Source: Auanema rhodensis | Lineage: Eukaryota > Animalia > Nematoda | Length of the DNA stretch: 64,000 nt | Assembly: GCA_964057225.1 (NCBI GenBank) | Contig: OZ059895.1 | Span: 7,502,001-7,566,000 of the forward strand | Direction of reading: 5' to 3' | Shown here: positions 12,445-54,000 of the stretch, in pieces | Layout of the letters: each line of letters starts with the position of its first letter | Numbering within the stretch: position 1 is the first letter of the stretch | The notes under the pieces: model-generated | What the model was told of the DNA's origin: nothing | Database searches by the model: none | The model's input: the letters and a program-made list of their open reading frames with translations, nothing else | Made by a program: the position numbers and the translations under genes

Positions 12445-13170
12445 CATATCAAAGATGGGAAAAGCATAAGAGAAATCAAATATATTACATAGAGATGATC
12501 TAACATTTCATCCTAACAATGACCTCCATCATCTTTACGAAAGCTAGAAAACTATCGTTTGTTGTAGTTCTATCAGTTTACTATGAATTTTTCTTCTTCT
12601 TTCTTTCTTTTTGTGTTAAATAGGGAGATTGAGCGAAAGAGACGAGAAAAACTAAAAAAACTACAAATATTCACTTCTGTAAACTGCAAAACTATAATCA
12701 AATTATAATCAAATATTCAAGAAATAAATAGAAAATATATTAAATTGCTGAAACTCCAGCATATGATTTATAAAAAAATATTATTAATAACATGATGTCA
12801 TATTTTCAAGAATTTAAAGAGGAATACCAATTTCTTGAGACAAACAACTAAATAAGAAAGCTTCACAGTTAGTATAGTTAAGTATAGTTAACTATGAGTT
12901 CTCACATAAGCACCGTTCTTGAATCGCCACACATGACTACATAAGCGGAGGGTGAGAAAGAGCTCATACTGAATGAGAACATTGAGAAAGATAGAGTTTG
13001 TTCAAGAAATAACGTCTTCTAATGCAATACAAATGCAGGAAAAGAACCTAACATAGAGGTCGGACAACAAGAAACCGATGAAATGACGATTGTAATCGAT
13101 TTCTTGTGTTCAACCACACCCATCACTAGCCACCCTACAACCGCATGTAAAAGAATTCTGATAGAGATAA

Positions 13171-13241
<71 letters not shown>

Positions 13242-13245
13242 AGAG
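13171..13245. repeat. (GA)n microsatellite
   Basis: Near-perfect AG dinucleotide run seen directly. Confidence 0.95.
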
Positions 13246-13864
13246 GAAGACAGGACAAGAGCGTATAAGATAAAATAGAAAATAAAAGATGCTGAACCCG
13301 TTGTTGTCTTATACAGAAAGCTAATTACACATGCAAATAGATTGATTAGATCATAATGATCAGAAGAATTCAGATGTTTCATCAGGAAATAAAGAATAAG
13401 ATAATTCAATTTATTTTATTTTATCTCAACATGGATAAGATCTATGTATGTACAAAGATACATAAATCAGATATATATATATGATAAAATAATTTAAATA
13501 AGTATTTAGTTCTTAGTTAATTATTTTTTAGAAAAGTACTTTGATTGTATAACAATGGCAAAAAAATAAACAACCTGAGTATTCTCTCACAACCGTCATC
13601 ATCATCAACAGGTATGGGTGTGGTCTCATCTTATCAAGAATACCCTTGAACTATGTCTTAGATCATTAGCAGGATAACAACCCATCAGTGTGAAATCAAT
13701 TTTTTTTTTAAAAATCCACTTATTTTCATCTGTAAAAATGTATAAAATACTATTTTTCAAATGGCTGTAAAACATTATTTAATTAACTGTAATTTTTGAT
13801 TGAATAGTTTTCTAATAATGAAAATGAAATTTTAAAAATATGATAAAAAGAAAATTTAAAAATC

Positions 13865-13942
13865 GGGCTCCGTCCTATCATTGTGTCATCAAAGACATAA
13901 GTCTTATGTAAAGGATTGGCTCTAGATAACTCTTCCTCGCCC
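13865..13942 (-). ncRNA. Box C/D snoRNA-like RNA, copy 1, with two 28S rRNA antisense elements
   Basis: Minus-strand order: GGGC stem, GAGGAAGA (C-like), guide AGAGCCAATCCTTT, ACATAA/TTATGT hairpin, TTGATGA (C'), guide CACAATGATAGGA, CGGA (D-like), GCCC stem, then TTTTT. The guides complement the recalled 28S segments AAAGGAUUGGCUC and UCCUAUCAUUG. Confidence 0.75.
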
Positions 13943-14010
13943 ACATGGGGATCGAACCCAAGACTACCGCTGTACTACAGCGCAACTTCGCATACTACCA
14001 CAGTTTGCCA
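13943..14010 (-). promoter_or_regulatory. tRNA-like Pol III internal promoter/leader of copy 1
   Basis: B box GGTTCGATCCC (13948-13958) and A-box-like TGGCAAACTGTGG (13998-14010), with a CGCTG/CAGCG stem between them. No acceptor stem. Confidence 0.7.
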
Positions 14011-14171
14011 TATTTTAAAGACTTCAATAGTCTATGATGATTCCTGGTTGACAGTGTTAGTGCCTCAAAAATAATATGTTTCTATACTGCATACTTTAAT
14101 TATTCAATTAGACATAATTTGTGAAGATTTAAGCATATCAGAAAACAATGTGAATCAAAAAAAATAAAAAA

Positions 14172-14255
14172 TTCAGGCTACGTCCTATCATTGTGTCATC
14201 AAAGACATAAGTCTTATGTAAAGGATTGGCTCATGATAACTCTTCCTCGCCCGAA
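14172..14255 (-). ncRNA. Box C/D snoRNA-like RNA, copy 2 (leader type A)
   Basis: Same core with a TTCGGGC/GCCTGAA terminal stem. Leader has A box TAGCCAATCGG (14298-14308) and B box GGTTGAAATCC (14257-14267). T-run downstream. Confidence 0.65.
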
Positions 14256-14395
14256 TGGATTTCAACCACTAACTTCTTGGCAGTTTGAAACACATATCCG
14301 ATTGGCTACAATGCCACAAAACTGTACTTAGAAATGAGACATAATTCGTGAAGATCACATCTGAATACAGTACGAATCAAGAAAAATAAAAAAGA

Positions 14396-14479
14396 TTCAG
14401 GCTACGTCCTATCATTGTGTCATCAAAGACATAAGTCTTATGTAAAGGATTGGCTCATGATAACTCTTCCTCGCCCGAA
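14396..14479 (-). ncRNA. Box C/D snoRNA-like RNA, copy 3 (leader type B)
   Basis: Core identical to copy 2. Leader TAGCCAATTGG...GGTTGAGATCC. Confidence 0.65.
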
Positions 14480-14623
14480 AGGATCTCAACCACTAACTCC
14501 CTGGCGGTTTGAAACACGTATCCAATTGGCTACAATGCCACAAGAAGTGAGTTTGAAATGAGACATAATACGTGAAGTTTGACCACATCTGAATACAGTA
14601 CGAATCAAGAAAAATAAAAAAGA

Positions 14624-14707
14624 TTCAGGCTACGTCCTATCATTGTGTCATCAAAGACATAAGTCTTATGTAAAGGATTGGCTCATGATAACTCTTCCTC
14701 GCCCGAA
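14624..14707 (-). ncRNA. Box C/D snoRNA-like RNA, copy 4 (leader type A)
   Basis: Core and leader identical to copy 2. Confidence 0.65.
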
Positions 14708-14847
14708 TGGATTTCAACCACTAACTTCTTGGCAGTTTGAAACACATATCCGATTGGCTACAATGCCACAAAACTGTACTTAGAAATGAGACATAATTCG
14801 TGAAGATCACATCTGAATACAGTACGAATCAAGAAAAATAAAAAAGA

Positions 14848-14931
14848 TTCAGGCTACGTCCTATCATTGTGTCATCAAAGACATAAGTCTTATGTAAAGG
14901 ATTGGCTCATGATAACTCTTCCTCGCCCGAA
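14848..14931 (-). ncRNA. Box C/D snoRNA-like RNA, copy 5 (leader type B)
   Basis: Core and leader identical to copy 3. Confidence 0.65.
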
Positions 14932-15075
14932 AGGATCTCAACCACTAACTCCCTGGCGGTTTGAAACACGTATCCAATTGGCTACAATGCCACAAGAAGT
15001 GAGTTTGAAATGAGACATAATACGTGAAGTTTGACCACATCTGAAAACAGTACAGATCAAGAAAAACAAAAAGCA

Positions 15076-15146
15076 TTCACGTCCTGTCATTGTGTCATCA
15101 AAGACATACGTCTTATGGAAAGGCTCATGACAACTCTTCCTCGCGC
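15076..15146 (-). pseudogene. Degenerate sixth copy of the C/D-type RNA
   Basis: 5-nt deletion in guide 1, a substitution in guide 2 and loss of the terminal stem. A B-box-like AGTTCAATCCC remains upstream. Confidence 0.6.
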
Positions 15147-15398
15147 ATCAAGGGATTGAACTCTCAATTTCAGCTCTCAACAAATCTTACATGGTTCAAC
15201 TACAACATAACAGTTTCAATTTCTCTTTTTGACTTTAAGAAAGTCTTGAATTTTGTTTAATAAGTACACATACATCTTTTTCTCTATGTTTGTTGCGTCA
15301 TTTTCACGTGAAGTGACGTGAATTTTTCACGTGATATGACGTTTCTATATAGTTGTCTTTATTCCTCAAGATTTATCTGAGAGAAGCGGCTGTGTATA

Positions 15399-16534
15399 AT
15401 GTCTGAGGTTATTAATTAAGTATTTATATATTATATATTTGAATTTATTTAGAACCAAACTGCAGACAGTAAAATGGTTGTAGTAAATATACCTATTGAC
15501 GAAGGAGAACCGTTAGGTGCTACTCCGAACGAAAAATTAGTTATAACGCGTGTGCAGCCAGATACAATTGCATATGATAAATTGAAAGTATGCTATAAAA
15601 TACAAATAGTTATATATGCTTCTTATATTATTTACAGATTGGAGATCAGATTCGAGAATTGAATGGAAGAAAAGTAAACGATTGCAATCATTTCTTTAAA
15701 CTTCTCAGAAATGCACCTCCCTCTGCTAAGATTACTCTTATTAGGTATAAAATGTTTTTATTTCTTCTATATAAATCTTCTCAAACATCAGAGATGAAAA
15801 GAAAGTTGAAGAATTGCAAGCTCGAATGAATATTCCAGAAGAGAGAGCCAAAACTATCATTCGTCGTGATGGATTTTCCTATATTATAGTGCAATTTCAA
15901 TGGATGCAAGGAGGGCCCAAGTTAGGATTAGGAATTAAGCATTACCAAAATCGTGTTTTGGTCTCTCGTTGTGATCCGGGTTCTCTGGCTGCTGAAAATC
16001 TTATGGTTTGCATTATTTGAAAAATATCAATTAAATTATATCTGATATATTGATAGATTGGTGATCATATAATGGATGTTGACGGTGTTCGAGTTACCGA
16101 CAAAGACGTAGCACGTGATTTATTGATAAAGGGTTTAACAGTTAGTTTATAATTACAGAAAAATAACTAAATAATTGTTTAATTTTTAGAAGCAAGGCAG
16201 TATTTCCTGCGTGATCGAAAGACCCGAAACTACAGAAGCAAAGGCTTGGACACAACAAGCGCTGTCTACCCAAGCTGCTCTTCCTCCTTCTATTACCTTG
16301 GGGGTAGATGTACGCAACATTGCTCAAAGAGAACGTAACCGTATTACTGAAAATAGACAAGTAAGACAATATCAATACCTTTTCTTATTGAATTGTAATA
16401 TTTAGCCTAACAAATCAATTCTCGTGAAAGGAACTATTACTTCCAATGCCCGTGTAATCATTAATGATACTATCAAAGAGCATGTCATTGCTTCAGATAA
16501 TGAAGGACGTTGTCTCCGAGCTGTGAAAAAATAA
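15399..16534 (+). CDS. smz-1: Two-PDZ protein, SMZ-1/SMZ-2 (sperm meiosis PDZ)-like
   Basis: MSE|NQ...[18 protein letters not shown]...[26 protein letters not shown]...DKDVARDLL...ERPET...LRAVKK*, closely resembling the recalled C. elegans SMZ-1/2. Confidence 0.75.
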
Positions 16535-40100: not shown

Positions 40101-43100
40101 TTCAGGTGAGTTAATATAAATGGTTTGACTATTATCAGTAATATTCAGAACGGTTGTCTATTGAGAACTACTGTTGATAATGTTACCGGAGATATGCTTG
40201 ATACTCGTACTAGATACTTAGGTACTCGTCCAGTAAAACTTTTCAGAGTCCGAAGTCAGAACAAAGATGCTGTAAGTTTTCCTAAATTATTCATTAATTT
40301 CATTGATGTGTTCTAGGTGTTGTGTACATCATCTCGCTCCTGGCTCTTATACCATTACCAAAATCGTTTCCATCTTACACCTCTAAGTTATAACACATTA
40401 GAATATGCTTCTAGTTTCAATTCTGAACAATGTCAAGAAGGTATCGTAGCTATTGCAGAAAATACTTTGAGGTTGGACTATTTTAATTTCTTAAGTAAAT
40501 TTTTTGTATCAGAATTATGGCGGTTGAAAAGTTGGGTGTATCCTTTAATCAGACCGAATTCCAACTGCAATATACACCTCGTAAGATGATTATTCATCCT
40601 CAAGCTGGAAGTTTGATGGTAATTGAATCGGATTACGCGTCTTACACGGAGTCCACAAAGAATAAGAAGAGAGAGGAGATGGCAGAGGTTAGTATTGTGT
40701 GTATTATAGCCGAAATGGGTTTGTCATGAATTATGAGGGAAGTCATGAAAGTTCGACTCCCGCAGCCATTTGTCATGCTATTCCATGTAGTGAATGCGGT
40801 TAGCAGACAAAGATACCATAGTGTCGGTTGCTAAATTGAACTCAGTGTGCGTGTGCCGATGTTCTATTACCAGCATTGGTTCCTATTTAACCTGATACAT
40901 CTTTTTAGGATATTGAAAGACTAGCCAGTGATCCGGAAGAAAAAGAACTTGCAAAAGAGATTGCTAGCACTTTGAGGGAAAATAAGTTGGATGAAAGTGT
41001 TTATGGAGCCCCAAAAGCTGCACCCGGTAATAAGGAAGTGATAAAAACTTTTAACTCTTCCGCTTTAAGGAAAATGGGCGTCTTGCGTTAGATTAGTGCA
41101 TCCCAAGACGGGTGATGTACTTTCCTTCTTCGAACTCCCTCAAGACGAGGCGGCAAAGTGGTTGGTACCTTTGTTTTTAAAGAATGATAAAGATTCCTCT
41201 GCATAAAAAGAATGTAAAAATATGCACTTTGAAGCAAATGATCAGAAATGGATAAAATAACTAATACAACATATTTTACAGTATTGCTCTTGTTCAATTC
41301 AAAAATCATCCTGATGCATTATTAGCACTGGTAGGATGTGGAGTGGGACAGCGGCTAGGCCCCATCCCAACTCATCGTAAAGGTTGCATTTATACATTCT
41401 TGTTATCTGCCACCGGAGAAAAATTCGATTTGTTGCATAAGACTGAAGTTCCTATGGTACACTCTTTGAGCTTTGATGTAGTATTCACTATTTTTTGTAG
41501 CCTGTTACCGCTATTCACGATTTCCGAGGATCAGCTCTTGTAGGATTTGGATGCCATCTTAGAATGTATGATTTTGGACAGAAGAAGTTATTGGCAAAGT
41601 GTGAAAACAAGGTTAGTACATTTCTCGTGTTTTTAAATAATAGAGAATTGAGAGAAAGAAGTATGTATATTTTATTTAAAACTTTTGAATAGGTATATAA
41701 ATAACCGGAACGTAAAATTATGCGAAATTAGTAACCCGAGTTATGAAATGATTCGATTTGTTTTGCGTCATTTGCCGCTACTTGCTTGATGTTGGCATGG
41801 GATTGGTTGAGTACATCAACATTTGTGGTGGTGATGATGATGCTCGATTTTTTATTCCCGTTCTTGCGATTGAATTGTATGAGTTGTTGGTGTACTGAAA
41901 GGCATAGTTTAAAGATCATTTTTCTTGGATAATATAGAATGTTGACTAACTTTTGTGGTGTTAGGGTGATTTAAATGATGGCATGTCAAAAGGCGCTTGA
42001 AACATGTCCGGAACTCTCTGTTAAACACAGTATAGATGACTGGATTAAGTGCTGAGTTCAAATAGCCTAGCCAAAACACAATCGACCAAGTTACTTCATC
42101 GGTTTCTAGCTCTAATCCATACATCAAAGCAAATCCCAACCAGCAAAATATGAAGCAACCCGTTACAATGGCCACAGTTTTGGCTGCTTTGATCTCCAAA
42201 GACAATCTTTTCTCGTATGCACAACCCGCCTGAAAATCGTTAATGAAAACTTTGGAATGATTAATTTGATTACCTTTTTAATTTGTCCCCTACGTATAAG
42301 TTTTTTCAATGGGTTGATGGAATGTAAAACTTTGCTGGGTGATCTTGAATCCTCATTCTTTTTCTTTTTGTTTTTTTCGGAGCTGAAAATACTTTGTATT
42401 ATACCTACGTTTTCTAAATCTTGTTTACCTGCTCTGAACGTCGATTTCCATAATTGGCTTTTCTACTCCGATTCCTGGTGTTTCCAAAGTGTTGAGCGCA
42501 ACTGGAGATTGCCCGTTCTGATGGGGAACAGGAGAATAGCTATTTCTTGCCAAACCAGCGTTTGAATAAGCTGTGGTACTATTAACTGCTGTTTGACTAC
42601 TGCTTCTATAATTAACTTCTTCATATCCATACAAAGAAATTTGATCTTACAAATGCTTGTTGACAATGGTCGATGGTCGAATGCTGGCAACGGAAGATCC
42701 CCGATGAACACGCAGCATCGGTAGTGATTCCTTAGCTAGCACACTGGGGTGGCTGAGTAGATAGCTTTTTGTGTTTTTATTAGCATTTGCTGTCACCTGA
42801 AAATAGTAAGCTGGTCTTTGTTGTTCTTGGTTGGTTAAAATTAGTAATATTGTTTGAGATTTGAATAGTTCATAAATGCTTTGTAATGAATGCTCACCTG
42901 CATCATTCCGGAATAAATGCTCTTAGTAGCTGCTCGAGCCGCAATATATATCCGGAAGTACACGAAAATGACGACTATCATAGGCACATAGAAACTACTG
43001 GACGCAGAGAAGATGATGTAAGCTCGACCAGCACTTGCAGGAGAGCATTTACATTTATCTTCGGGTAGTGATGAACTTCCCATAAAAAAGCTTGGACTGC

Positions 43101-52515: not shown

Positions 52516-54000
<1,485 letters not shown>

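Follow-up and report, generated by a model that had tools for sequence, protein, structure and literature searches.

A probable CeN53-family box C/D snoRNA gene with a UM2-type leader and atypical terminal boxes in the nematode Auanema rhodensis

Among described snoRNA genes, the closest counterpart of the locus reported here is CeN53 of Caenorhabditis elegans, a UM2 locus and one of the four at which a joint leader-snoRNA transcript was sequenced, by RACE (PMC2527325). UM2 loci in C. elegans carry tRNA-like A and B boxes 33 bp apart that lie within the primary transcript (Li et al. 2008, PMC2527325), with transcription starting 9 to 13 bp upstream of box A and terminating at a run of at least four T residues (PMC2527325). 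The consensus boxes of the ceN53 family are ordinary (C, AUGAUcGA; D', CUGA; C', UGAGGAU; D, CUGA). With regard to structure, and using the k-turn nomenclature of PMC5689011 throughout, box C/D k-turns have U:U at 3b:3n and G:C at 4b:4n, and the ribosomal Kt-7 has C:G at -1b:-1n, a GAA loop, A:G at 3b:3n and C:G at 4b:4n (PMC5689011). A:G is the best-folding pair at the 3b:3n position (PMC5689011, PMC5061560).

Here, we scrutinized a 64-kb stretch of the A. rhodensis genome (the window, from whose first letter all coordinates are counted) and found on its minus strand, at 13865-13942, a known kind of gene, namely a CeN53-family C/D snoRNA that has two guides and is preceded by a leader of UM2 type; the RNA is neither new nor U3-like. 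At gathering thresholds, no Rfam model matched the 64-kb window. The only matches with E < 1 were those of this 78-nt RNA (copy 1) and of four sister copies (copies 2 to 5) to RF01641, the Caenorhabditis C/D snoRNA ceN53, with scores of 28.7-29.1 bits and with E values that were 0.002 when 2 kb were searched and 0.066-0.085 over the full 64 kb; by score, at about 29 bits, they fall below the 50-bit gathering score for membership of this family. Copy 1 scored 28.7 bits (E 0.0027) and covered model positions 1-74 of 74. Over this full length, the terminal stem (all four pairs standard), the C' box and the ungapped guide elements GAGCCAAUCCUUU and AAUGAUAGG stay in register. Given two independent guides whose order is shared between RNAs of like size, orthology of 13865-13942 with CeN53 is much more likely than convergence. 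A literature search for C. elegans RiboMeth-seq and for Auanema snoRNAs returned nothing on either.

Read 5' to 3' on the minus strand, copy 1 begins with the 5' stem GGGC (13942-13939), the loop GAG (13938-13936) and GAAGA (13935-13931), the C-like box AGGAAGA thus occupying 13937-13931. A short spacer separates GAAGA from guide 1, GAGCCAATCCTTT (13922-13910), which is followed directly by a perfect 7+1+7 palindrome, ACATAAG-A-CTTATGT, able to form a hairpin (13909-13895); inspection of the sequence after guide 1 in copy 1 revealed no CUGA-like D' box. A canonical C' box, TGATGA (UGAUGA in the RNA; 13891-13886), is preceded by CTT and abuts guide 2, CACAATGATAGGA (13885-13873), after which come the D-like box CGGA (13872-13869) and the 3' stem GCCC (13868-13865). 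An earlier reading of this DNA from its letters (hereafter the sequence-only reading) had described much of this layout, and its observations are borne out at 13865-13942 on the minus strand: the two guides of 13 nt are there, as is the GGGC-GAG-GAAGA...CGGA-GCCC motif, and guide 1 leads into a hairpin with no D' box. Approximately 600 bp from copy 1, at 13163-13245, lies an (AG)42 microsatellite.

Likeness to ceN53 extends to the length class (74-78 nt), the terminal 4-bp stem, the antisense elements, arranged in both RNAs as GAGCCAAUCCUUU, C' box and AAUGAUAGG, the upstream tRNA-like leader with A and B boxes, and the downstream oligo-T run. In contrast, the C box is AGGAAGA rather than AUGAUcGA, the D box is CGGA or CGUA rather than CUGA, and the D' box CUGA has become CAUA with a 7-nt insertion that forms the hairpin. 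The C' box, UGAUGA, is nearer consensus than the UGAGGAU of ceN53, guide 2 has been lengthened to 13 nt (CACAAUGAUAGGA), and the A. rhodensis gene occurs as six clustered copies. Neither the RNA nor its leaders and precursors were predicted to fold more stably than shuffled sequences, as is usual for C/D RNAs.

An Rfam search found no rRNA in the 64-kb window, and complementarity of the guides to 28S was judged from published metazoan and human 28S primers as stand-ins for the 28S of A. rhodensis. The exact complement of guide 1 lies inside the universal metazoan 28S primers TAACYTCGGGAWAAGGATTGGCTC and AGAGCCAATCCTTTTCC (PMC4860332), extending over 13 nt if W is A and 12 nt if W is T. For guide 2, 12 of the 13 nt are complementary to the human 28S primer GATGTCGGCTCTTCCTATCATTGT (PMC6822507), which ends at that point. 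The 13-nt complements are AAAGGAUUGGCUC for guide 1 and UCCUAUCAUUGUG for guide 2; both target stretches are also identical in human 28S, and the predicted duplex energies are -20.3 and -16.2 kcal/mol, respectively. Against a 3.5-kb rRNA, about 0.003 antisense 13-mers would be expected by chance and about 6e-6 for two, in agreement with the sequence-only reading, which had considered two such matches improbable by chance. Guide 2, at 13 nt longer than the 10 nt expected of such an antisense element, lies directly upstream of the D-like box; guide 1, also 13 nt, matches the metazoan 28S primers but has no adjoining D' box. Counted upstream from CGGA, guide position five is a U pairing with the A of UCCUA, the nucleotide given by the earlier D+5 count. 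The broader proposal of the sequence-only reading, a guide RNA of box C/D type whose two antisense elements face conserved LSU rRNA, is likewise supported. The Caenorhabditis guide implies a CAUUUAC-like 28S after CCUAUCAUU, and a 28S of this form would cut duplex 2 to 9-10 bp. In metagenome contigs, both guides separated by a 15-45-nt gap were found at seven loci, all of them chance-like in bacterial-type sequence and none a snoRNA or of human appearance.

The region immediately upstream of copy 1 (13943-14012, minus strand) is a tRNA-like leader in UM2 layout. Five nucleotides upstream of the RNA it carries a perfect B box, GGTTCGATCCC (13958-13948), and 31 nt further upstream an A-box-like element, TGGTAGTATGC (14000-13990). 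An exact match to GGTTCGANNCC occurred only once in 64 kb, in this leader, compared with 0.09 expected. Downstream, a T5 run at 13858-13862, a probable Pol III terminator, starts 3 nt past the 3' stem. Copy 1 therefore agrees with C. elegans UM2 loci in the spacing and placement of its A and B boxes and in having at least four consecutive T residues no more than 40 bp downstream, with no such run internally. The array units have leaders of the same kind (14253-14322 on the minus strand, with equivalents upstream of copies 3 to 5), with a good A box, TAGCCAATCGG, and a B box, GGTTGAAATCC or GGTTGAGATCC, that has two mismatches and has lost the C of TTCGA. A T6 run lies 7-9 nt past each array copy, and the longest T run inside the units is T3.

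ARAGORN identified no tRNA in the window, and the leader folds without an acceptor stem or cloverleaf; the leaders were hence rejected as tRNA genes and are regarded as tRNA relics. As far as they are described in PMC2527325, which cites them, the plant tRNA-Gly-snoR43 clusters are similar in that the C/D snoRNA is driven by an upstream internal promoter of tRNA type, in being multi-copy and in having a precursor that needs cutting or trimming. Unlike the tRNA-Gly of those clusters, the A. rhodensis leader is no tRNA (none by ARAGORN, no acceptor stem), so release of a functional tRNA by RNase Z is unlikely. When the window was scanned for other canonical C/D or B-box-led units, only an H/ACA-like unit near 40750 was recovered. 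This H/ACA-like RNA (40707-40906, plus strand) ends in ACA and TCTTTTT directly before a TTTTTAG 3' splice site, and it is preceded by a tRNA-like leader, TAGCCGAAATGG ... AGTTCGACTCC, of the same design as in the snoRNA cluster. On the strength of this second unit, the tRNA-like-leader layout seems to be in general use in the A. rhodensis genome.

At higher coordinates on the same strand lie copies 2 (14175-14252), 3 (14399-14476), 4 (14627-14704) and 5 (14851-14928), which are mutually identical and form a 224/228-bp tandem array with an A-B-A-B higher-order pattern (copies 2 and 4 in A-type units, copies 3 and 5 in B-type units), and a decayed copy 6 at about 15078-15146. Copy 1 differs from the array copies at four positions, two between the C-like box and guide 1, where the array copies carry UCAUGAG and copy 1 has UCUAGAG, and two at the 3' end, which reads CGGAGCCC in copy 1 and CGUAGCCU in the array. 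The array copies consequently have the D-like box CGUA and the 3' stem GCCU in place of the CGGA and GCCC of copy 1, and the label of an array RNA that had been attached to the CGGA-GCCC motif was misplaced, since this motif is confined to the solitary copy 1 and the four tandem copies read CGTA-GCCT. Copy 6 is an example of real decay, with two 5-nt deletions and several substitutions. Its 5' stem GGGC has changed to GCGC, the deletions fall within guide 1 and in the D/stem region, one substitution each is found in guide 2 and in the hairpin, and the C-like box is intact.

Comparison of the A and B units (14589-14812 vs 14361-14588) showed that 18 of 108 columns differ, all of them in the spacer and leader, while the identical block spans the RNA and its 38-nt 3' flank. 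This pattern points to homogenisation by blocks and not to selection acting just on the RNA, and the 78/78 identity between A and B copies was dropped as a sign of selection on the RNA because the identical block extends into that flank. Copy 1 and the array copies are 95% identical over the RNA (74/78), but their leaders agree at only 52-56% of positions and their 3' flanks at 64%, a contrast that supports constraint on the RNA or else a recent conversion that did not reach beyond it. A SINE or retroposon origin is unlikely given that the units are head-to-tail repeats without an A-tail or target-site duplications.

Neither terminal box is canonical. The C box differs from RUGAUGA in that both uridines are replaced, giving AGGAAGA, with G3, A4, G6 and A7 kept; the D box differs from CUGA in being CGGA in copy 1 and CGUA in copies 2 to 5, and it is deleted in copy 6. 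Nonetheless, a stem and k-turn can be drawn from the sequence of copy 1, comprising the stem GGGC/GCCC, the loop GAG, the pairs G·A, A·G and A·G, and a closing G-C. Relative to RUGAUGA/CUGA, the uridine-free motif of copy 1 is changed only at the L3, 3b and 3n uridines, all G and A residues of the G·A pairs being kept. In k-turn nomenclature, -1b:-1n is C:G, 3b:3n is A·G and 4b:4n is G-C; the mutually pairing positions 3b and 3n were changed together, from U:U to A:G, and G occupies the loop position L3. This G counts against a working guide, because the nucleotide that Snu13/15.5K contacts there is a flipped-out U. Copy 1 resembles Haloarcula marismortui Kt-7 (PMC5689011) in its C:G at -1b:-1n, its purine-rich loop (GAG here, GAA in Kt-7), its G·A and A·G pairs and its A:G at 3b:3n. 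It differs from Kt-7 in having G:C at 4b:4n, as box C/D k-turns do, where Kt-7 has C:G, and in being the terminal motif of a guide RNA, Kt-7 being located in rRNA.

In the array copies, CGUA places a U at 2n and hence a non-standard A·U at 2b:2n. U is the most frequent 2n nucleotide in Thermus thermophilus Kt-23, a likeness to the array copies, whereas in Kt-7 it stops folding in metal ions (PMC5061560). Two other candidates for an array D box were rejected: a CUGA 6 nt further 3' (GCCUGAAUC), for which no 5' partner yields a stem plus G·A pairs, and the spliced junction described below, where GUGA is followed by a UCUUC complementary to GAAGA, which arises in A-type units only and with a geometry that is not k-turn compatible. 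To our knowledge, no box C/D snoRNP with U at 2n has been described. The sequence-only reading had likened the terminal motif to the k-turn of U3. A k-turn can be drawn, as it had proposed, but the likeness to U3 did not hold: the window gave no Rfam match to U3 at gathering or E-value thresholds, the U3 C'/D boxes are canonical UGAUGA/CUGA, and the motif is nearer to ribosomal Kt-7.

Contigs of four RNA-like runs were used to examine transcription across 13700-15400. They include the spacers and leaders of the array but never a 45-nt segment, which the joints and the splice-site context identify as a minus-strand GT..AG intron (14813-14857; equivalents at 14589-14633 and 14361-14405). Joints were observed at 14812/14858 in two runs and at 14360/14858 in a third, with GT..AG on the minus strand in both unit types, leaving exons of 179 and 183 nt per unit. 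The donor, GGAC/GUAGCC, lies inside the D-like box and the acceptor reads UAUUCAG/AUGUG, so that splicing deletes both T-runs together with the 3'-terminal 7 nt of the snoRNA. In copy 1, which reads CGGA, the donor position has no GU. Contig depth was 90-590 over a neighbouring exon, whose coverage begins immediately behind an AG at 15371, and 3-20 over the array, the latter summed over copies, and the unique flanks were uncovered. That the runs are RNA is a guess, for which the uncovered unique flanks and the depth of the neighbouring exon argue; being contigs, they drop rare forms, unspliced ones included, and reveal neither small RNAs nor transcript ends. No contig in the four runs was specific to copy 1 or its leader, a result that has no bearing on a mature snoRNA. 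The array is presumably read through in a transcript made by Pol II and spliced once per unit.

CACGTG-type boxes form a palindromic cluster at 15296-15371, with the array on one side and a plus-strand exon on the other. This exon begins at 15371 after CTCAAG, and contigs of three runs stop exactly there; one contig at 15371 continues upstream by 23 letters with no counterpart in the window, which so come from a distant exon or a spliced leader. Pfam searches of the neighbouring ORFs gave no useful context. Elsewhere in the window, an exon of an S-adenosyl-L-homocysteine hydrolase gene was identified at 52984-53664 on the plus strand (Pfam PF00670, E 2e-35).

The analysis shows the sequence anatomy, the homology to ceN53, the layout of leader and terminator and the complementarity to published 28S. 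Regarding Pol III use, processing, snoRNP assembly and methylation, we infer the following course. RNA polymerase III would start about 10 nt upstream of the A-box-like element in the decayed tRNA leader, near 14010, read through the leader and the 78-nt snoRNA and stop at the T5 run, the leader being trimmed off after snoRNP formation. Assembly of the snoRNP would occur on the terminal k-turn drawn above. Guide 2 would then pair with 13 nt just 3' of the peptidyl-transferase loop and direct 2'-O-methylation of the A in UCCUA, and guide 1 would pair with 13 nt at AAAGGAUUGGCUC, at the base of H63/ES27. By a simple count, the A predicted for guide 2 would lie 17 nt 3' of the NSUN-1 m5C site, and the candidate position for guide 1 would be the G of AAAG-G-AUUGG. 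Guide 1 may methylate poorly or only pair, since its D' box has been lost. The array copies are sister genes with weaker B boxes and the D-like box CGUA; at a minimum, Pol II presumably transcribes across them, with splicing at that box. Judged from sequence and homology, we consider it moderately probable that the RNA is a working methylation guide, at least through guide 2.

C/D copies with non-canonical C and D boxes and no D' are often unexpressed pseudogenes, and all six copies could accordingly be decaying CeN53-type relics whose loss of boxes precludes a snoRNP, a canonical copy elsewhere supplying the function. The boxes AGGAAGA and CGGA or CGUA, the missing D', an Rfam score below the gathering threshold, the visibly broken copy 6 and array B boxes without the C of TTCGA all fit such decay. 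However, the B box of copy 1 is perfect and its k-turn consensus complete, with the terminator and the two guides still in place, its RNA body is 95% identical to that of the array where the flanks reach about 50-64%, and the three box changes leave every G·A position untouched, two of them falling on mutually pairing positions. We thus regard wholesale decay as unlikely, although it deserves consideration. A more restricted proposal, quite improbable in our judgement, retains copy 1 as the sole snoRNA gene and takes copies 2 to 5, with the remnant copy 6, mainly as a spliced Pol II non-coding RNA in which the snoRNA-like part is exonic cargo. On this account, each 224/228-bp repeat would give a 179/183-nt exon, made of spacer, leader and truncated snoRNA, and a 45-nt intron. 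Contigs of the four RNA-like runs that cover the exons with their spacers and never the 45-nt segment, GT..AG joints on the minus strand in both unit types, and a D-box change of G to U that creates the donor GU absent from copy 1 are what this proposal predicts, and the uncovered flanks beside an exon at depth 90-590 make the runs look like RNA. Their RNA nature is nevertheless guessed, the depth of 3-20 is low and summed over copies, genomic units lacking the 45 bp are an alternative source of the joints, and, as contigs lose rare forms, unspliced or Pol III products are possible. Spliced read-through and snoRNA production are, moreover, not mutually exclusive.

The sequence-only reading had also envisaged a non-methylating chaperone that pairs simultaneously with pre-28S domains IV and V as a folding aid in 60S assembly. 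Such bridging would suit a guide 1 that is followed by a hairpin in place of a D' box, the atypical terminal boxes and the stability of both predicted duplexes, but nothing in the data supports it specifically, and guide 2 abuts the D-like box in exact methylation register. Since the Caenorhabditis homologue has the same two guides beside ordinary CUGA D' and D boxes, a normal double-guide layout, the chaperone idea is unneeded; many ordinary methylation guides have two guide elements directed at sites far apart. We consider this role very improbable, and the methylation guide remains the reading we prefer.

Unusual for a guide of this family are the uridine-free boxes of copy 1, the CGUA-GCCU of the array and the use of the GU of CGUA as a 5' splice site. 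A bolder interpretation, which we hold to be speculative and more probably wrong than right by a wide measure, is that a working snoRNP assembles on a uridine-free Kt-7-type k-turn and that the array CGUA doubles as a 5' splice site, with splicing and assembly in competition. If this were true, the k-turn of copy 1 (AGGAAGA/CGGA, with A:G at 3b:3n and G at L3) should fold without protein by published folding rules, and read-through transcripts of the array would lose their Pol III terminators by splicing. Should the RNA prove functional, the C/D uridines that count as 'invariant', three in all, would be dispensable given the G·A pairs and a purine pair at 3b:3n. A D-like box overlapping a used splice donor would be a small curiosity on Pol III snoRNA units under Pol II read-through. 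Overall, a CeN53 orthologue with a UM2-type leader mainly carries the C. elegans layout to another rhabditid nematode and indicates that this layout can be amplified in tandem.
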